Virus record (IMG/VR): IMGVR_UViG_3300032236_001850
Span: 370,510 to 434,509 of that record
Reading direction: 5' to 3' (one strand)
DNA length: 64,000 nt
Shown here piece after piece: positions 55,274 to 64,000 of the stretch. Made by a program: the position numbers and the translations under genes. The first letter of the stretch is position 1; every line of letters begins with the position of its first letter. The notes under the pieces are model-generated. The model saw only the letters and a list, made by a program, of their open reading frames with translations. It had not been told where the DNA came from and did no database searches.

Positions 55274-56092
55274 ATGCCAGAATTACCAGAAGTAGCAAGA
55301 ACCGTACATTCTTTAAGTCAAATAATAAAAGGTGGTACTTTAGAGGAGGTCATTATCCATTCCGGCCGATATGCAAAGCACGGTGATCCTGCTGGATTGG
55401 AGAATTTTAGAAATGATCTCCCAGCAAAAATAGACGATATTAATTTCCAGGGCAAACTCATAATATTTGAATTTACTGGGAGTAGCGGAAAGAAGTGGTG
55501 GGCTTGGAACACATTAGGTATGTCCGGTGGCTGGAGAAATGATTGGTCTAAACATGGACATGTAGAATTTAGATGTAAGTTTCTATCTGTTTTCTTCACA
55601 GATATACGAAATTTTGGTACACTCAAATTTACTGATAGCCTGGATGAAACGAATAAAAAGAAAAGAACAATTGGACCGAATCATTTAAGTGACGAGATTT
55701 CTAATGAACTTTTTAAACAAAGGCTGATGAAATATCCAAATAAAACACTGCCAGAGGTTCTAATGAATCAGTCGCTGATAGGCGGAATCGGAAACTATAT
55801 AAAGGCTGAGGTTCTTTATAGAGCTGGTGTATCACCACATAGACTTGTTGGCTCTCTTAACGATGAGGAATTTTCAGCTCTGAATCGAGAAACAAGGGAC
55901 GTTGTCAGGAGTTCTTATGCCAGAAGAGGTGCAACAATTAGCACATATCGAGACATTGAAGGGAATGGTGGTGAGTTTGTTTTTTACTTCAAAGTTTATG
56001 GTAGACCGATATGTGAAAATGGATACCAAGTAGTTAGAGAAATAACTAAGGATAAAAGAATGACCCACTGGGTACCACAAATACAAAGATAA
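55274..56092 (+). CDS. mutM: Fpg/Nei DNA glycosylase with zinc-less finger
   Basis: MPELPEV, LGMSG, DIRNFG, GIGNYI; lacks the four Zn-finger Cys. Confidence 0.85.
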   Translation: MPELPEVARTVHSLSQIIKGGTLEEVIIHSGRYAKHGDPAGLENFRNDLPAKIDDINFQGKLIIFEFTGSSGKKWWAWNTLGMSGGWRNDWSKHGHVEFRCKFLSVFFTDIRNFGTLKFTDSLDETNKKKRTIGPNHLSDEISNELFKQRLMKYPNKTLPEVLMNQSLIGGIGNYIKAEVLYRAGVSPHRLVGSLNDEEFSALNRETRDVVRSSYARRGATISTYRDIEGNGGEFVFYFKVYGRPICENGYQVVREITKDKRMTHWVPQIQR

Positions 56093-56278: not shown

Positions 56279-57301
56279 TTGAAGATGTCAAAGCGAGCAA
56301 GATCTGAGGAAATAAGACAAACACTTAAGAAAATTAAAACCTATAGTATGAATGAGTATCACCCAAATCACCCGAGATCCATATCTGAATTATTGGAGGA
56401 GGAAGAAGAAACTAAAAGAAAAAATGATTTCACACAGTGGAACATAGTCGGAGATGGTAGTTATATAGCTGCACCTAAAACACAGAAGATTTTATTTCCA
56501 GGTCTTTATGAACCACACTATAACAATAGAGCTAGTGAATGGGGATTGATGAAACAGGATGTTAATACTGATGAGCTTTATGAGCTACCAACAAAGGAGA
56601 TTGAGGTTATCCTAACAGATCTTAAAAGCTTCTGGGATAAGAAGGATGAATATGCAAAGTATAAACTTATGCACAAAAGGGGTATACTTCTTTACGGAGA
56701 TCCCGGATGTGGTAAATCTGGTATACTTCAGCTTTGTATGAAACACATCATCAAGGATCTTGGTGGAATAGTGATTAATGTTAAAGATGAAGATACTGTT
56801 AGAGGTTACTTGGAAGTTATTGGTAAACTAAGACAAATCGAACCAGATAGACCAATCATAGTTATCATAGAGGATATTGACGGTATAGCAGCGGAAGGAA
56901 GCTATGTTACATCTCAACTTCTTAACATGTTGGATGGTATTAAGCAAATTGAGAATGTTGTTTATATAGCAACAACAAATTACCCTGAGAAGTTAGCGGA
57001 AAGGATCACAAACCGTCCGTCTCGCTTCGATAGAAGGTATTATATAGCTCCTCCGTCTCCAGAAGTAAGAATGTCTTATTTGAAAAATAAACTCGGTAGT
57101 GAAGCCGAAATCGACTTTAATATGTGGGTTAAAGATACTGAGGGCATGTCAATCTCTCACCTTAAGGAGCTATTCATATCTGTTTTCCTATTGGATAATA
57201 AATATGAGGAAGCTCTTAAGCATCTGAAGGAACTTAAGAAAACACCGAGAGGGAAGGGACAAAAAGGAGTTGGGTTCAGTACATCTAAAGACAACGATTA
57301 G
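56279..57301 (+). CDS. AAA+ ATPase
   Basis: GDPGCGKS, IEDID, LLNMLDG, TTN, RPSRFDR. Confidence 0.9.
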   Translation: MKMSKRARSEEIRQTLKKIKTYSMNEYHPNHPRSISELLEEEEETKRKNDFTQWNIVGDGSYIAAPKTQKILFPGLYEPHYNNRASEWGLMKQDVNTDELYELPTKEIEVILTDLKSFWDKKDEYAKYKLMHKRGILLYGDPGCGKSGILQLCMKHIIKDLGGIVINVKDEDTVRGYLEVIGKLRQIEPDRPIIVIIEDIDGIAAEGSYVTSQLLNMLDGIKQIENVVYIATTNYPEKLAERITNRPSRFDRRYYIAPPSPEVRMSYLKNKLGSEAEIDFNMWVKDTEGMSISHLKELFISVFLLDNKYEEALKHLKELKKTPRGKGQKGVGFSTSKDND

Positions 57302-57644: not shown

Positions 57645-58211
57645 ATGAAGGTGGTATTTTTGGACAACGATGGCGTGATTTGTCTTTCCAATAATTGGGG
57701 AGGTAGAACAAGAAAATATGAGGAGTATAGAAAATTGCATCCTGATGCAGTATCATACAAAGAGGTTGACGTTTTTCATAGATTTGATAATTTCGACAGA
57801 AAGGCTATTAGAGTTCTTAATTCCATCTTGGAAGAAACCGGTGCCGAAATAGTTGTAAGTTCAGATTGGAAGAAGCATGCAACATTGGAGGAGCTTGGTG
57901 ATTATTACGAATCTCAGGGAATCATTAAAAGACCTATAGCTGTTACTAGAAGTTTCATTGGATGTGATAGACCTGCGGATTTCAATTGGAACAGATCTCT
58001 TCATTATGAACAGGAAAGATCTTTCGAGATTAATCAGTACGTAAAGGATAATCCACAGATAACCCACTGGGTAGCGGTGGATGATCTCGATATGTCAATG
58101 CGAAAGGACTGGGGAGTTGAAAATTTTGTCCTCACCCCTAAGATGAGCGAGGGTATAAAACAATCAGGTATAAAAGAAAAAATTATGACTTTTTTGTCCG
58201 ATAATATATAG
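57645..58211 (+). CDS. HAD-family phosphatase (Swiss-Army-knife RNA-repair type)
   Basis: FLDNDGV, VSSDW, AVDD. Confidence 0.8.
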   Translation: MKVVFLDNDGVICLSNNWGGRTRKYEEYRKLHPDAVSYKEVDVFHRFDNFDRKAIRVLNSILEETGAEIVVSSDWKKHATLEELGDYYESQGIIKRPIAVTRSFIGCDRPADFNWNRSLHYEQERSFEINQYVKDNPQITHWVAVDDLDMSMRKDWGVENFVLTPKMSEGIKQSGIKEKIMTFLSDNI

Positions 58212-58214
58212 AGG

Positions 58215-58727
58215 ATGGAAAAATGTATATTCTTTTTGCTTTTACCAATATTGATATTTAGCCAGGATTGTAATCCTGCAAAAAGGAACGTGATAATTGG
58301 AGATTCTTGCACCCCTCTAATTGCTAAGCACACAGAAAATGCTAAGCTTTCAATCTGGAAATCTGGTATTGGAGTTAATTGGTTGATTCATTCACTTGAT
58401 GTTAGAAAGGCTGATGAGAAGGTTTCTAATGTAATAATAAATATTGGAACTAACGATGCTTTCAATCCACTTGCTAATATACGCAGACTTTTCTATAGTC
58501 TAAGAAGGGCTTATCCGTGTGCCAATTTTATTGCAGTCCAAGGATCTTGGGGATGGGGTAACAATAGAAGAATAAAGGAAAGCAAGGTTAAAGCTTTTTA
58601 TGAAATCTTCAAATCGTATGGTGCTTATATTATAGATCCACCGATTGGATTTGTTAGAAATCCACATTTGGATTTATCAGTCTATACTCTAATCGGAAAA
58701 GAGATAGATAAAAAATTAAAAAATTAA
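58215..58727 (+). CDS. Secreted SGNH/GDSL-like hydrolase
   Basis: IGDS, G, IGTND, NPH; signal peptide IFS|Q. Confidence 0.65.
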   Translation: MEKCIFFLLLPILIFSQDCNPAKRNVIIGDSCTPLIAKHTENAKLSIWKSGIGVNWLIHSLDVRKADEKVSNVIINIGTNDAFNPLANIRRLFYSLRRAYPCANFIAVQGSWGWGNNRRIKESKVKAFYEIFKSYGAYIIDPPIGFVRNPHLDLSVYTLIGKEIDKKLKN

Positions 58728-58732
58728 AAATT

Positions 58733-59017
58733 ATGTCGCAATTGAAAGTGATGGACTTCTATGCAGAATGGTGTGGTCCATGTAAAACATTAGCTCCGAT
58801 CATCAAAGATCTTATGGATGAATACGGGGATGGAGAAAAATCGGGTGTACTCGTTGAAAAAATAAACGTCGATGACCATAGAGAATTGGCTGATAAATAT
58901 TCAATTAGAAGCATACCTACGATTGTCTTCGAGAAAGATGGTGAGGTACTCGAGAGAGTTACTGGATTACAATCAAAGGCCGTTTTAGTAGCCAAGATTG
59001 ATAGTTACACCAATTAA
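58733..59017 (+). CDS. trxA: Thioredoxin
   Basis: WCGPC, SIPT. Confidence 0.95.
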   Translation: MSQLKVMDFYAEWCGPCKTLAPIIKDLMDEYGDGEKSGVLVEKINVDDHRELADKYSIRSIPTIVFEKDGEVLERVTGLQSKAVLVAKIDSYTN

Positions 59018-59031
59018 ACATAACAAAAAAG

Positions 59032-59057
59032 AAAGCCGAGCATCGCTCGGCTTTTTT
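59032..59057. terminator. Bidirectional terminator between convergent operons
   Basis: AAAGCCGAGC-ATC-GCTCGGCTTT flanked by A and T tracts. Confidence 0.85.
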
Positions 59058-59221: not shown

Positions 59222-59674
59222 TTATTTTTTGCTGTAAAAAATGATCATATCTATGACATTTTTAAATAACCATCCCTCAACTTTGGGTAATTTGCAAAGA
59301 AAATCATATTCGTACTTATAGCAAATTAATTCCTCCTCGCTTTCTTTTAGTTTTTCAACTTTTGAATAAAGATAGAGATGATATGATTCATGTACTAAAA
59401 CTGATGCTACATCGTTTACCGAACCTAGGTACATATCTCTAGTGTTAATCACAATTGTCTTAGGTGGTTTAGTTGTTGAAAAATCACCAATCATAAATTC
59501 TATGTTATTGCAATTTTCCATCAGAAGATCGTATTTTGGTCTATCTGTATTTTTTATAAGCTCTATTGCTTCCTCTATTATTGGCTTCCAATTGGAGATG
59601 TCAGATATTTTTATCTGAGAAAAAGAAAAAATTGGAAATAGTAACAAAAAAATTATTGAAGTCCAGATACGCAT
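59222..59674 (-). CDS. Secreted HExxH metallopeptidase-like protein
   Basis: Signal peptide SFS|Q; VLVHESYH..EE. Confidence 0.6.
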   Translation of the reverse strand: MRIWTSIIFLLLFPIFSFSQIKISDISNWKPIIEEAIELIKNTDRPKYDLLMENCNNIEFMIGDFSTTKPPKTIVINTRDMYLGSVNDVASVLVHESYHLYLYSKVEKLKESEEELICYKYEYDFLCKLPKVEGWLFKNVIDMIIFYSKK

Positions 59675-60099
59675 TCCTCTATAGCTTTTTTTATAGCAGT
59701 TGACACGGTCATTTTAGAAAATGGCACTTTACCATCAACCAATTCTATAAATGCTGCTCTGACCTCCGTATCGGATTCACCTATTCCCTCGTAGGTTTTA
59801 CCCTTATAATATAATTTTATACCAACCTGTGTTACCTGGTTTGTTCTTTCTATTCCAACAACTCTTAGGGATTTTTTAGGAACTCCGAAGTAATAAATTT
59901 CCACAGAAATCTTTTCTCCGCTGTCAGATAAGCAAAATTTATTCGAAAGTTGTTCTTCCAATATTTGTTTCACGCCAAATCTTATATCCCTATTGCCAAG
60001 TTCTCTAACCTTAGCTGTGGAATAGATAGTGTCAACTTTAACACAATTCTGTGCTATTCCTAAAAGTGGAAATAGCATAATAAATAATAGTTTTTTCAT
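59653..60099 (-). CDS. Secreted protein, possibly CsgG/TolB-N-like
   Basis: Signal peptide GIA|Q; beta-alpha-beta pattern ending STAIKKA. Confidence 0.4.
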   Translation of the reverse strand: MKKLLFIMLFPLLGIAQNCVKVDTIYSTAKVRELGNRDIRFGVKQILEEQLSNKFCLSDSGEKISVEIYYFGVPKKSLRVVGIERTNQVTQVGIKLYYKGKTYEGIGESDTEVRAAFIELVDGKVPFSKMTVSTAIKKAIEECVSGLQ

Positions 60100-60107
60100 G
60101 TTTGTTT

Positions 60108-62870
60108 TTATTTTAAATATCCAGTTCTTATTAGATAAAAGTTTGTGCTACCCCCGGTTAATATGCCATCTATGTTCATTACTTGTAAGCCTGGATATGT
60201 AGATTTTAGATTGGCAGTTCCCGAATTTATTTGTGACCATTCAACTGGTGTGAATATTCTATATGTTGGTGTTGAATTTGTCCATCCCGTAGATCCTCCG
60301 CTCTTAAAGTAAATTAAGAATATATCTGTTACTGATAAATTGTTATCGTTATTAACATCCATTCTGTAGAAATCCTTAGAATTGAATATTCTATTTAGAA
60401 CTTTTGTATTGAAGCTATATGCATCATTTATGGTTGGTGCAGAGATCGGAATGTTTTCTAATGCAATTCTGAAATCATTCGAAACTGATGACAATGTGGT
60501 TGTTATAAGATACTTCCCCGTTGAATCTGTCGGATATATTCCGTATAAGGTGTAAATTATCTGGCTTTTTACTCTGTAATATAATTTAACTGGAATTGCA
60601 TTTATGCCAGTATTTTCTGAATCGTAAACGTATCCATTATATGTGAATGGTGTGCTTACTAGGCCAGATTGGGAATAAGTGGTACATGAACCATTTGTTA
60701 CAACAGCTCTAAATAAAACACCATCTGTCTGATTAGTAAAAGTATATGAAGTTGTTGTGTTTGAAATATCCGTCCAGGTTACACCACTATCAGTGGATCT
60801 TTGCCATTTGGATACTGTTCCCGTATTTCCACTTAGATTTATAGTTCCTGATGTACCTGCATAAGAAGAAACAGAGCCTCCCGTTGGTGGTGCAAGTACA
60901 GAAACACTTACAACATTTGGATAAGTTACTACAGTACAACCTGTTGCTTGTATTTCAACTCTATAGTAATAAGTACCTGGTGCTGTAATTACTCCATTAG
61001 TCCAGTTTGATGTTGTTCCAGTAAGTGCAAAGTTATATAAAGTACCTGTGTTATTATTACCGCTTGTATCAGTTAAAGAAGTAATAGTATTTGTGCCGTT
61101 TGGATTTCCTTGATTAAATCTATAATATTCTACAAGTGAACTTGATGTACCTATCTCGGAATTCATATTTGATTGAATATCAGATTGTGAACGTACAACA
61201 TTCCAAATTCTTAACTCGTCTATTGTTCCATTAAAATATTGAATACCTGTTTGTATTGATCCTATACGTATTGAGGGTGGTGCACTTCTAAGACCTGTGG
61301 CACCGGTTGTACTGGCTTCTAATACACCATTAATATAAAGTTTCATGGCACCAGTTGAACCATCCCAAGTAGCCGCAACGTGTACCCAATTTCCAGTATT
61401 AATACTTGTAGTTGATTGAATGGTAACATCAGGAAGTCCAACACCAAATGCTAACTTACTATTAAGTAATGATGTACCAAAATCTGTTGTAGCACCACCA
61501 ACTTCAGCATCAACTATACCATTACCCTGATACCATTGTGATCCTGAAGGTGATGCTTGTGTTGTTTTAACCCAATACTCTATTGTAAAGGCATTAAGAC
61601 TAGGTTTAGGTATATTTACATAATCATTAGAACCATCTGTATTTAAAGCACCGCCATAAATAGTTTCACTTAAACTTGTGGTTGTATTTGCTATATCAGT
61701 CCAATTTACATTATCAGTTGATCTTTGCCATTTATTTATATTTCCGCTTTGTCCTGAAAGTGTTAATTGTACATTACCACCCGTACAAATTGTTCCTGTA
61801 GTTGTTGCCAGGGTTCCACCAATTGGAACTGTTCCTGTTTTTGTAACGACGACAGTACCATAAGCACCAACATTAGGTTCTTCTGCTCTAATAGTATTTG
61901 AAGCTAATGTTCCTGCGTTAGATGTGAAAACAACAGTTCCTATACCCGAAGCATTTGTTGTTAAGGTATAAGCTGATAAAGTTCCACCACCAACATCAGA
62001 AGACATAACTAAGTTAGTAGGCATTCCAACACCATTAACATCTTTTGTTGTAACGGTTATAGTTGATGTTAGAGCAGTACAAGAAATTGAATTAGATGAT
62101 GTTAAAACAATAGAAGCTACACCTTGTGAATAACTTCCGGTACTTGATAAAGGTGTTGAATTAGGTGCCACTAAAGCACTATAAACATCATGTTCTTCTG
62201 TTGCACCACCTGTTGCGGCAGTATATCCAAAATAGAAATCAGAAATTCCTACAAAATTTGTAGCTAGGTTAATTGAAACGGATAACGTAGCTGCAGTAGG
62301 ACGAGTAGTTGTATTTGATATACGTACTTCCAATATGTGAGTTACTCCGTTATACTCTATCCAATTATATTTCATTGCACCATCTGCTAAGTTAACTGGA
62401 GAAGCAACCACGTTTGTACTACCGGAGTGTAATACCCCATTTATGTCGAGTGCTATATGATTATTACCACCAACTTCACCATTGTCATAAGTATCATACT
62501 CAACTGCAATAGACTTTCCCGGCATTCCTTGATACCCTAGACCACCACCAGAACTACCTGCATTATTACTAGCTTGTTGAATACAGAATGTCATACCATC
62601 CGCTCTTGAACCAGGTATCATTTTTGATGTGAAATATGTGGAGAATGACATATCATCAGGAAGAGAAATTTTCTGTTTCCAGAAAGCTGATCCTGCTTGA
62701 TTACCAGCATTAGGGGTTAATCTTAAATATGAACTACTAATAATGGAAGCATTACCGTTAATTTGCCATCCACCAGCCGAACTAAAGTTTGGTGAATAGA
62801 TAGGAAGTGGAGTTTGTGCATTAATTAGTGTGCTTGTTATTATGCACAGGAATAATAATATTTTTCTCAT
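60108..62870 (-). CDS. Secreted multidomain adhesin: L-type lectin, LamG/ConA, Ig-like repeats, dockerin-like EF hand
   Basis: ADGMTF/AVEYDT lectin motifs; WVHVAAT, GTIDELRIWN; KWQRSTD repeat twice; DVNNDNNLSVTD. Confidence 0.75.
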   Translation of the reverse strand: MRKILLFLCIITSTLINAQTPLPIYSPNFSSAGGWQINGNASIISSSYLRLTPNAGNQAGSAFWKQKISLPDDMSFSTYFTSKMIPGSRADGMTFCIQQASNNAGSSGGGLGYQGMPGKSIAVEYDTYDNGEVGGNNHIALDINGVLHSGSTNVVASPVNLADGAMKYNWIEYNGVTHILEVRISNTTTRPTAATLSVSINLATNFVGISDFYFGYTAATGGATEEHDVYSALVAPNSTPLSSTGSYSQGVASIVLTSSNSISCTALTSTITVTTKDVNGVGMPTNLVMSSDVGGGTLSAYTLTTNASGIGTVVFTSNAGTLASNTIRAEEPNVGAYGTVVVTKTGTVPIGGTLATTTGTICTGGNVQLTLSGQSGNINKWQRSTDNVNWTDIANTTTSLSETIYGGALNTDGSNDYVNIPKPSLNAFTIEYWVKTTQASPSGSQWYQGNGIVDAEVGGATTDFGTSLLNSKLAFGVGLPDVTIQSTTSINTGNWVHVAATWDGSTGAMKLYINGVLEASTTGATGLRSAPPSIRIGSIQTGIQYFNGTIDELRIWNVVRSQSDIQSNMNSEIGTSSSLVEYYRFNQGNPNGTNTITSLTDTSGNNNTGTLYNFALTGTTSNWTNGVITAPGTYYYRVEIQATGCTVVTYPNVVSVSVLAPPTGGSVSSYAGTSGTINLSGNTGTVSKWQRSTDSGVTWTDISNTTTSYTFTNQTDGVLFRAVVTNGSCTTYSQSGLVSTPFTYNGYVYDSENTGINAIPVKLYYRVKSQIIYTLYGIYPTDSTGKYLITTTLSSVSNDFRIALENIPISAPTINDAYSFNTKVLNRIFNSKDFYRMDVNNDNNLSVTDIFLIYFKSGGSTGWTNSTPTYRIFTPVEWSQINSGTANLKSTYPGLQVMNIDGILTGGSTNFYLIRTGYLK

Positions 62871-64000
62871 AATAATAATCTTGTGCCCATCATCACTGTG
62901 TAATTCATGGCGCTATTTTTTAGATCGAATGCACCCCCAACATTTACGTTTATTTTAAATCTCTTGGTTAATCCTATATTTGTACCAACTATTGGTAAAA
63001 CAACTTGCGGGGATTTCAATAATATGTCATTATAATAACTAACATATGGACAATAGACATACAGAAGTAGCATTTTCATTTGGTATCTTTTTGACACCTT
63101 AAGATCATACATACCACCTGCTATTGCAGCTGTTCCTATAAATGGTTCTCCGTATACTTTTCCGAATGAGCCACTAATCATATAAACAACCTTAAAATTT
63201 TTAATCTTCTTGAATGATCTCATTTCTCCAAGTGCTATTGTTCCATAATATGACGTTTTAGTGTCAAAACCAAAAGTCAATGTTGTAGATATTAGATCAA
63301 TTTTTTTATCGCCTATAAAGGCATAAAATCCAGTTAAATTAGGTCCTTTTAATGCTGTTGTATAATCAGCCATCAATCCTGATGACCTTAATCCATCCCA
63401 TCTTGTTGATGTGAAACCACCTGTAAATTTACCTCCGTATGATGTTTCACTTTTCTTAAAATTAAATCCAACAAAATCACTACTCGCAAGAACTGTAGGT
63501 CTATTACCATTTTTACTTGCAGCAGATGATGCTGATTTTCCACCAGGTGTACTATTACCTATTGAATTTACTGAACTACCAACAAGATTTGTGGCTGGTT
63601 TATCTTCTTGTATGCTAGATGTTCCATTATTCTGTGTATTTGTATTACTATTTGCTTGTCCATTACCACTTGTTCCACTTGATGCTGATTGACCATTATA
63701 GTTTATTGATCCATTAGAACCTGAGGAACCATTAGAAGATACTGAACCATTAGAACCTGAGGAACCATTAGAACCATTAGAAGATACTGAACCATTAGAA
63801 CCTGATGAACCATTAGAAGATACTGATCCATTAGAACCTGAGGAACCATTAGAACCTGAGGAACCATTAGAAGATACTGAACCATTAGAACCTGAGGAAC
63901 CATTAGAAGATACTGAACCATTAGAACCTGATGAACCATTAGAACCTGAGGAACCATTAGAAGATACTGAACCATTGGAGCCATTAGAACCATTAGTACC
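62867..64000 (-). CDS. Ser/Gly/Asn-repeat protein with probable C-terminal outer-membrane beta-barrel (5' partial)
   Basis: Frame stays open from 64000 to the stop at 62867 (translated by hand); alternating beta-strand pattern at the C-terminus. Confidence 0.65.
   Translation of the reverse strand, partial: GTNGSNGSNGSVSSNGSSGSNGSSGSNGSVSSNGSSGSNGSVSSNGSSGSNGSSGSNGSVSSNGSSGSNGSVSSNGSNGSSGSNGSVSSNGSSGSNGSINYNGQSASSGTSGNGQANSNTNTQNNGTSSIQEDKPATNLVGSSVNSIGNSTPGGKSASSAASKNGNRPTVLASSDFVGFNFKKSETSYGGKFTGGFTSTRWDGLRSSGLMADYTTALKGPNLTGFYAFIGDKKIDLISTTLTFGFDTKTSYYGTIALGEMRSFKKIKNFKVVYMISGSFGKVYGEPFIGTAAIAGGMYDLKVSKRYQMKMLLLYVYCPYVSYYNDILLKSPQVVLPIVGTNIGLTKRFKINVNVGGAFDLKNSAMNYTVMMGTRLLL
63710..63996 (-). 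repeat. Coding tandem repeat of 18-nt units (SNGSSG / SNGSVS)
   Basis: GAACCATTAGAACCTGAG and GAACCATTAGAAGATACT interleaved. Confidence 0.9.

Follow-up and report, generated by a model that had tools for sequence, protein, structure and literature searches.

Single phage-encoded proteins are known from the envelope of infected hosts. Llp of T5, Lom and Bor of lambda, and Imm and Sp of T4 are found there during infection, and T5 Llp masks the receptor, which blocks superinfection and protects the progeny from debris. One report adds type IX secretion system (T9SS) cargo: in the Cryophage, whose host belongs to the Bacteroidota, a type-A sorting domain is encoded by the phage itself, and the cargo differs from one phage variant to the next (Bellas et al. 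2020, PMC7468147). In addition, dockerin-bearing proteins with signal peptides have been noted on putative archaeal virus contigs, and an effect on adhesion was proposed for them (PMC13452462). In the present study we analysed a conserved multi-gene cassette, i.e. an arrangement of a different scale, encoded by a T4-like phage with a genome of 434.5 kb. Four of its genes lie on the minus strand at positions 59222–64000 of the window, the whole 64,000-nt stretch of DNA under analysis, which forms the final 64 kb (positions 370,510 to 434,509) of the single 434,509-bp IMG/VR virus record IMGVR_UViG_3300032236_001850. The secreted products of this operon seem to be built for the host envelope and not for the virion, and we tentatively propose that they display an exchangeable lectin on the infected cell.

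Several described systems share individual features with the cassette. As in the cellulosome, a cohesin recognised at the Pfam level lies in a surface-targeted scaffold, a constant C-terminal dockerin-like module is borne by exchangeable subunits, and the split of the scaffold into an adaptor (gp014) and an anchor (gp015) in the related phage immuto (see below) follows the same layered logic. Unlike the cellulosome, the cassette is phage-encoded and belongs to a diderm Bacteroidota host, its scaffold carries a T9SS sorting domain in place of SLH or sortase signals, its subunits are lectins and not enzymes, and its dockerin-like segment lies inside a beta-sandwich module and scores near or below the Pfam threshold, the binding itself being a prediction made here. 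The Cryophage resembles it in the type-A sorting-domain gene, the Bacteroidota host and the variable cargo, but the Cryophage cargoes are single enzymes or PA14 proteins, whereas here a cohesin scaffold is part of a fixed multi-gene cassette that also comprises a barrel, CsgG/LpoB-like proteins and lectins that are not cargo. The barrel protein shares its layout with type Va autotransporters and with FapF, in that a signal peptide is followed by an N-terminal part, then by a linker and finally by a C-terminal 12-strand barrel; however, its "passenger" consists of a disulfide domain of ~60 amino acids (aa), a short amphipathic stretch and a disordered spacer of 69–366 aa instead of a beta-helix, and the phage barrel has no sequence match to PF03797. 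Finally, Llp, Lom, Bor, Imm and Sp are single small proteins to which no sequence relation was seen, in contrast to a multi-part assembly with a swappable head. None of the compared systems combines the parts seen in this cassette, and a literature search found no account of it.

The operon crosses the junction of the contig ends. The 70 bp at the start of the contig (C1) are identical to the 70 bp at its end (window 63931–64000 = C1:1-70), and these identical ends fall inside the barrel-protein gene (the fourth gene of the window part, gene 4), within a coding 18/36-nt tandem array, which indicates that the assembly broke inside this repeat. The break is thus one of assembly and gene 4 is not cut by biology, while the repeat copy number at the junction is uncertain. 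Joining of the contig ends yields one 594-aa barrel protein with its own signal peptide, upstream of which lie five further same-strand genes (locus L001, C1:1-16000). The sequence-only reading, made from the letters of the window alone, had described four closely packed minus-strand genes. The listing of open reading frames (ORFs) agrees with this (overlaps or gaps of ≤22 nt), but the operon as a whole is larger, with nine genes in all and a linkage to an endolysin and a holin-like protein. Its features, in the direction of transcription, are as follows.

C1:4319-5140, minus strand: endolysin with PG_binding_1 and GH19 domains (phrog_181 at 1.4e-67), first gene of the operon
C1:2359-4293, minus strand: 644-aa secreted protein with cohesin and T9SS sorting domains
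C1:2018-2350, minus strand: p110, a 110-aa protein with one weak membrane segment
C1:1442-1786, minus strand: membrane protein of ~114 aa with two membrane segments
C1:721-1437, minus strand: 238-aa secreted protein
62867–64000, minus strand: barrel-protein gene, 3' part, 377 codons with an open 5' end (the 5' part is C1:71-721 after removal of the 70-bp overlap)
63707–64000, minus strand: 18/36-nt tandem repeat coding for a Ser/Asn/Gly-rich disordered spacer, continued at C1:1-232
62870–63520, minus strand: C-terminal 12-strand outer-membrane beta-barrel domain (AlphaFold 2 model and structural neighbours)
60108–62870, minus strand: 920-aa secreted lectin protein in the variable slot (ORF, Pfam and PDB matches)
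62178–62765, minus strand: L-type (legume) lectin domain, residues 36-231 (Lectin_legB 3.2e-29)
61173–61637, minus strand: LamG/concanavalin-A-like domain, residues 412-566 (Laminin_G_3 8.8e-28, Pentaxin 3.5e-6)
60111–60668, minus strand: constant C-terminal anchor module (beta-sandwich, dockerin-like segment and tail), residues 735-920 (alignment and profile)
60294–60359, minus strand: dockerin-like calcium-loop-plus-helix segment, residues 838-859, beginning DVNNDNN (read from the sequence)
59653–60099, minus strand: 148-aa secreted protein, a core gene (16 relatives; invariant Q17, C19 and C56)
59222–59674, minus strand: 150-aa secreted mini-zincin-like protein, the last and an accessory cassette gene (signal peptide ending FS|Q; 14 relatives, 37-53% identity)
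59378–59392, minus strand: HESYH motif, residues 95-99 of the 150-aa protein (invariant residues among relatives)
59032–59054, minus strand: terminator-like hairpin with a T run (10-pair stem, 6 G-C pairs; 1 site found vs 0.4 expected in shuffles)

The terminator-like hairpin sits between a converging thioredoxin gene and the cassette end, and closes the operon.

The 920-aa protein carries a legume-lectin domain (Lectin_legB 102.6 bits, Lectin_L-type_dom 96.2 bits) whose PDB matches include winged-bean lectins and ERGIC-53. Pfam also finds a LamG domain (Laminin_G_3 97.8 bits), and so confirms the description of the product as a lectin/LamG protein. After these domains come a pair of Ig-like repeats and, at the C-terminus, a module of ~185 aa. 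The C-terminal module, which we refer to as the anchor module, aligns with the C-termini of the proteins encoded in the same slot in all relatives, and also with residues 200-380 of the 644-aa protein. A profile built from it detected exactly two copies in the genome, one in the lectin and one inside the cohesin protein (E 1e-60 or better). As an observation on close relatives, window position 61733 is joined to 60850, with 40 other letters in between, on contigs of three metagenomes (pond or viral); the first KWQRSTD Ig-like repeat of the lectin gene is thereby linked to a site that lies shortly upstream of its second one, a domain-level rearrangement between the two internal repeats.

The dockerin-like motif had led the sequence-only reading to predict a cohesin partner upstream, and this prediction, set beforehand as a test, was borne out by the 644-aa protein. 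This protein contains both a cohesin domain (PF00963, 45.2 bits, cut-off 24.1) and a type-A sorting domain (Por_Secre_tail, PF18962, 45.3 bits, cut-off 27; TIGR04183, 37.6 bits, cut-off 23), and a genome scan showed it to be the sole cohesin and the sole carrier of a T9SS sorting domain of the phage; in particular, none of the four window genes encodes such a domain. Its internal copy of the anchor module was matched by Dockerin_1 (PF00404) with 20 bits when the protein was scanned and with 23.8 bits when the genome was (cut-off 22.9); slot proteins of relatives score 16-19 bits against the same family.

The slot between the barrel gene and the 148-aa gene is the variable part of the cassette. 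In relatives it encodes proteins of 302-990 aa, whose heads are (i) Lectin_C, (ii) Lectin_C with LamG, (iii) Ig_7, (iv) legume lectin with or without LamG, or (v) sequences without a Pfam match, all on the same anchor module, which is common to 81 proteins with varied heads. A hydrolase domain was found in none of these heads.

The remaining genes are far more constant. Relatives of the 238-aa gene were detected on 336 IMG/VR contigs, as well as in 5,588 protein clusters of a 5.8-billion-protein collection, mostly at 80-92% identity, and near-identical DNA is present in pond, lake, freshwater and viral-fraction metagenomes. The gene order (cohesin protein, p110, optional two-segment membrane protein, 238-aa protein, barrel protein, variable lectin, 148-aa protein, optional HExxH protein) was kept in five loci around two barrel relatives, in 23/23 viral barrel loci and in 80/80 loci of the 238-aa gene, the latter being those kept for comparison out of the 336 found. 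All five core genes are present in 48 of 65 distinct architectures, and most of the remainder come from loci that end short of the full flank. Among these 48 complete cassettes, 32 carry the HExxH gene and 32 the holin-like gene, while an endolysin is encoded within ~8 kb in 31, at varying positions and in varying orientations. One sub-clade (L072-L088, L120 and L124) has the HExxH gene at the other cassette end on the opposite strand, with the endolysin downstream, also on the opposite strand; here linkage is retained and order is not. In relatives a non-specific DNA/RNA endonuclease with a signal peptide (Endonuclease_NS 9.8e-28) is encoded directly upstream of the cassette (L002:5608-6303; L030:5202-5780, which is gp012 of immuto), and this gene is absent at that position in the genome studied here.

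A cultured phage also carries the cassette. In the Flavobacterium phage vB_FspM_immuto (160 kb, Baltic Sea) it corresponds to gp013-gp019, of which gp013 is a C-type lectin on the anchor module and adjoins a split scaffold, gp014/gp015. The product of gp014 corresponds to the first half of the 644-aa scaffold, with its cohesin-like region and anchor module, and that of gp015 contains the cohesin (36.7 bits) and the T9SS sorting domain. The same division of the scaffold gene into two separately secreted proteins (~368 and 261 aa) was observed in L090, L093 and L094 besides immuto (L030).

The barrel protein with its Ser/Asn/Gly spacer had likewise been recognised from the letters alone, and modelling bore this out. 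The last 217 aa were modelled with AlphaFold 2 (AF2) from an alignment of 39 relatives, reaching down to 20% identity, and gave a 12-strand barrel with a predicted local distance difference test score (pLDDT) of 84.6 and a predicted template modelling score (pTM) of 0.77. Foldseek searches of the PDB with this domain returned EstA, FapF, NalP, NanC, BrkA, intimin, Hbp and EspP, its neighbours in the AlphaFold DB are mostly autotransporter beta-domain clusters, and in the ESM Atlas a PF03797 cluster matches it with a TM-score (TM) of 0.85 and a root-mean-square deviation of 2.3 Å over 206 residues. Sequence searches revealed no Pfam match on the protein at E≤0.1, PF03797 included, save a repeat-driven "Collagen". 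Among 1.84 billion representatives, phmmer found 67 barrel relatives (representatives at 50% identity), in which the barrel domain is C-terminal in every match covering most of it and the proteins measure 400-700 aa. A word-indexed search of the 5.8-billion-protein collection returned 591 relatives of the domain, which were unnamed or named "hypothetical protein". All family members possess a signal peptide, an N-terminal domain of ~60 aa with two conserved cysteines, an amphipathic stretch and a hydrophilic spacer, and it is the spacer whose length (within the range given above) and composition vary. No relation between the N-terminal domain and the anchor module was detected by hhalign.

Other assignments of this protein were considered and rejected. 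The Pfam match "Collagen" and the PHROG match "tail fiber" both fall on the low-complexity Ser/Asn/Gly repeat; a collagen-like adhesin does not agree with a repeat that is not a continuous G-X-Y and whose composition varies between relatives; and a PorP/SprF partner for a type-B sorting domain found no match in Pfam or NCBIfam. The Ser/Asn/Gly repeat is shortened in frame, by 18 nt and 9 nt, at window positions 63726 and 63879 on contigs from the source run as well as from other runs, which indicates that the spacer length is polymorphic in natural populations. The extra ORFs at 63411-63692 (plus strand) and 63703-63999 (minus strand) are alternative-frame readings of the barrel-protein gene and not credible genes; two of the alternative-frame ORFs in the repeat and spacer region run through the tandem array itself.

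The small proteins of the cassette were more difficult to classify. The label "CsgG-like", originally given to the 148-aa protein, could hardly be upheld for it: the feature-based leads point weakly to LptE, CsgG and DUF4410 (0.88-0.89). The 238-aa protein, placed by language-model features near the CsgG/HfaB/LpoB clusters (score 0.94), comes closer to these proteins; two of its close homologues are named CsgG by the Joint Genome Institute, and its short motifs align with CsgG at equivalent positions. It differs from them in lacking both a PF03783 (CsgG) match and a lipoprotein cysteine. PF03783 matched neither the 238-aa nor the 148-aa protein, nor anything else in the whole genome at E≤10, and hhalign comparisons with nine flavobacterial CsgG domains gave probabilities of 0.6% and 3.7%. 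Both proteins lack a lipobox cysteine and have sites of the signal peptidase I type (A|Q or S|Q) instead; the mature 238-aa protein contains no cysteine, and the distance from the Q to C19 varies within the 148-aa family. The AF2 model of the 238-aa protein, computed from a shallow alignment (70-92% identity), had a pLDDT of 42 and was unusable. Given the failures of the hidden Markov models, the absence of lipoprotein features and the unusable model, "CsgG-like" is best taken as a fold-level lead, which fits the upstream 238-aa protein better than the 148-aa protein. The two families are distant paralogues of each other (hhalign probability 81%, E 1.3e-5, 83 columns).

Pfam contains no curated family for the 148-aa or the 150-aa protein, and profile searches of the PDB with the 238-aa, 148-aa and HExxH families returned nothing significant; nor did one with the anchor-module family, in which dockerin chains appeared only at E ~1. 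The HExxH motif reported for the 150-aa protein was found as an invariant HESxH in its 14 relatives (H95, E96, S97 and H99), together with invariant E114, E115 and E122. An ESM Atlas model of this protein (pTM 0.80) has DUF2201_N, DUF2268, M48 and M1 among its neighbours (TM 0.53-0.63), and the motif, the candidate downstream ligands and the modelled fold make it a predicted zincin. The 114-aa protein resembles class II holins in its two hydrophobic segments and charged tail, as judged by hydropathy only, while p110 combines a Gly/Thr-rich weak membrane segment with a Pro/Lys/Glu-rich tail. None of the PHROG lysis families matches these small cassette proteins.

All three complete window genes begin, as had been noted, with signal peptides, in which a hydrophobic core follows a K/R n-region and leads to an A/S|Q cleavage site, as read from the sequence. 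In alignments of relatives the hydrophobic core is variable and the Q of the cleavage site is invariant or nearly so. Judged by their N-termini, six operon products are Sec substrates with signal peptides of the Bacteroidota type, which expose Gln. Such cleavage (the Q-rule) is a trait of the Bacteroidota (PMC5837995), and Gln-exposing signal peptides have been noted in Porphyromonas phages too (PMC10367356). The Q-rule signal peptides, the T9SS sorting domain and the host of the cultured relative (immuto infects Flavobacterium sp. LMO8) all point to a Flavobacterium-like host, and Flavobacterium is the most likely host genus. Among 185,579 species genomes, the 238-aa gene was present in only four metagenome-assembled genomes, three of which are labelled Bacteroidetes, Flavobacterium or Flavobacteriaceae; in two of the four, the contigs bearing the gene (~250 kb each) are probably binned phage. 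We infer from the immuto host and the Q-rule signal peptides that the host has a T9SS.

The signal peptides had also been taken to mean that the products are directed to the envelope and are not parts of the virion, and our data agree with this. PHROGs v4 contains no family for any cassette protein except the endolysin and the low-complexity "tail fiber" noise on the repeat, and hence no structural family, and the cassette is surrounded by genes of DNA metabolism and lysis, outside the structural gene region (the Gp23-type capsid gene of the record is at 299 kb). The alternative, namely that the lectins fold in the periplasm (disulfides, calcium) and join the particles at or after lysis as host-binding decorations, can draw on the frequency of lectin, LamG and Ig domains in phage fibres and in the proteins that decorate capsids, on the likeness of head swapping to receptor-binding proteins, and on the recovery of the sequence from viral-fraction metagenomes (which shows DNA packaging only), but is very unlikely and the least likely of the rival explanations, as every secreted product has a conserved signal-peptide cleavage site, the genome offers no other cohesin or anchor module for attachment, the constant part sits at the C-terminus, opposite to its place in fibre proteins, and the cassette lies outside the structural gene region.

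In the display of a lectin on the infected cell, which is the function that we tentatively favour, the phage would make use of the Sec, BAM (beta-barrel assembly machinery) and T9SS pathways of the host. The host T9SS would export the cohesin scaffold and leave it on the cell surface, and the lectin would dock on the scaffold through its dockerin-like module. T9SS transports folded proteins, and together with the lack of a sorting domain in the lectin this suggests that docking might take place already in the periplasm, so that the scaffold would carry the lectin out. An envelope-anchoring or export-helper part could be formed by the barrel protein, the 238-aa and 148-aa CsgG/LpoB-like proteins and p110. 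As a result, a glycan-binding protein would coat the infected cell and afterwards the debris left by it, and its specificity would differ between phage lineages through swapping. Heads that are exchanged from lineage to lineage fit a target that likewise changes with the host, e.g. a surface glycan receptor. The most likely purpose would be that the lectin covers surface glycans of the host, by which superinfection would be blocked and the progeny kept off dead envelopes; a second-choice purpose would be the tying of neighbouring cells to the infected cell. The full chain, i.e. a cohesin-T9SS scaffold that binds lectins in the periplasm and exports them piggy-back, and a lineage-specific lectin coat that masks the phage's own glycan receptor, is in our estimation rather unlikely. 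If true, a cohesin-dockerin system would have been seen in a virus for the first time, as would piggy-back export through the T9SS, and the whole would constitute a multi-part receptor-masking device.

Several results weigh against lectin display. Dockerin_1 recognises the homologous module inside the cohesin protein but does not match the lectin copy directly: the 920-aa protein has no Dockerin_1 match at E≤0.1 and only one full calcium loop is visible in its segment. The N-terminal cohesin-like region of the scaffold is also below threshold (14.3 bits). The lectin has no recognisable T9SS sorting domain in Pfam or NCBIfam searches, and hhalign of its tail with phage sorting domains gave a probability of 2.8%. 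Finally, the neighbouring endolysin (31/48) and holin-like genes (32/48) could mean that the cassette serves lysis and not display. A complex prediction with both cohesin regions and the lectin anchor module scored 0.06 against a mark of 0.34, a result that counts neither way. Taken as a whole, the earlier interpretation is partly supported.

If docking works as predicted, the cassette would represent a display system for Bacteroidota that is both natural and modular. A cultured phage and host that carry the cassette, immuto and Flavobacterium sp. LMO8, make it directly testable. Flavobacteria recycle algal carbon, and given its abundance in ponds, lakes and the Baltic, the cassette could shape their aggregation, superinfection and attachment to particles.

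As indicated above, the recurrence of endolysin and holin-like neighbours obliges us to retain a role in lysis as the main rival of display. The cassette would then be an envelope module working with the endolysin and the holin-like protein, which would breach or weaken the outer membrane or set the timing of lysis by sensing the outside, with the barrel and the CsgG/LpoB-like proteins replacing spanins. Lysis timing in T4 involves the secreted protein RI. The endolysin is the first gene of the same operon, the 114-aa protein resembles a class II holin, p110 would provide a membrane segment with a periplasmic tail, and the search for a classical spanin pair found none. Neither a cohesin/T9SS cargo nor lectins exchanged between lineages, however, are known to take part in lysis; a third of the cassettes lack the holin-like gene, as does that of immuto, whose endolysin lies ~6 kb downstream; and no o-spanin lipobox was found. 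The proximity may reflect shared late expression only, and the position beside lysis genes would fit late co-expression. Taking these points together, we regard a lysis function as unlikely. A T4-type late promoter, TATAAATA, lies within 60 nt of only 7/496 ORFs of this genome, and its occurrence upstream of the cassette in a few relatives supports no claim on timing.

The place of action of the lectin invites two further explanations. Type-A cargoes of F. johnsoniae are often released and not anchored. Release of the cohesin protein by T9SS would turn the lectin complex into a soluble agglutinin or particle binder, secreted and not displayed. The secreted non-specific nuclease that relatives place beside the cassette suggests an extracellular tool set in line with this, and the variable T9SS cargoes encoded by other phages were proposed to be secreted (PMC7468147). 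On the other hand, the conserved outer-membrane barrel with its tethered domain and p110 point to an assembly fixed in the envelope, and the lectin bears no signal for export across the outer membrane; we consider release improbable. The same lack of an export signal is consistent with a function in the periplasm. Only the cohesin protein would then leave the cell, while the lectin would stay behind together with the CsgG/LpoB-like proteins and, in a FapF-like topology, the barrel protein's N-terminal domain, and these would bind glycan intermediates or peptidoglycan. This might serve envelope remodelling or the exclusion of incoming phage. FapF, with its periplasmic N-terminal coiled coil, linker and 12-strand barrel, is among the top structural matches, and the amphipathic stretch that follows the N-terminal domain of the barrel protein is conserved. 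The swapped heads nevertheless suggest a target that varies and lies outside the cell more than they suggest glycans of the periplasm, which are conserved, and an exported cohesin protein would be parted from its ligand, which leaves a purely periplasmic function quite unlikely.

The genome from which the window derives is that of a T4-like phage, and the window includes phage genes for DNA polymerase, topoisomerase II, ribonucleotide reductase and thymidylate synthase; megablast of the DNA against GenBank phages gave no match. IMG/VR rates the record as 100% complete, a call which rests on the 70-bp "direct terminal repeat", i.e. on the assembly break in the repeat and not on a physical genome end.

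The plus-strand neighbours of the cassette (55274-56092, 56279-57301, 57645-58211 and 58733-59017) include an Fpg/Nei-type DNA glycosylase, an AAA ATPase, HAD_SAK_2 and thioredoxin, the last of which also directly follows the cassette in immuto. A 170-aa ORF adjoining the cassette (58215-58727, plus strand) has a Q-rule signal peptide, a GDS motif and a weak match to Lipase_GDSL_2 (E 0.082), and may encode a secreted esterase. Furthermore, a crude scan of the genome revealed ~12 further ORFs with signal peptides of the Bacteroidota type (A/S|Q), as well as several lipoprotein-like starts, in scattered positions, which suggests that the phage encodes a sizeable secretome beyond the cassette.

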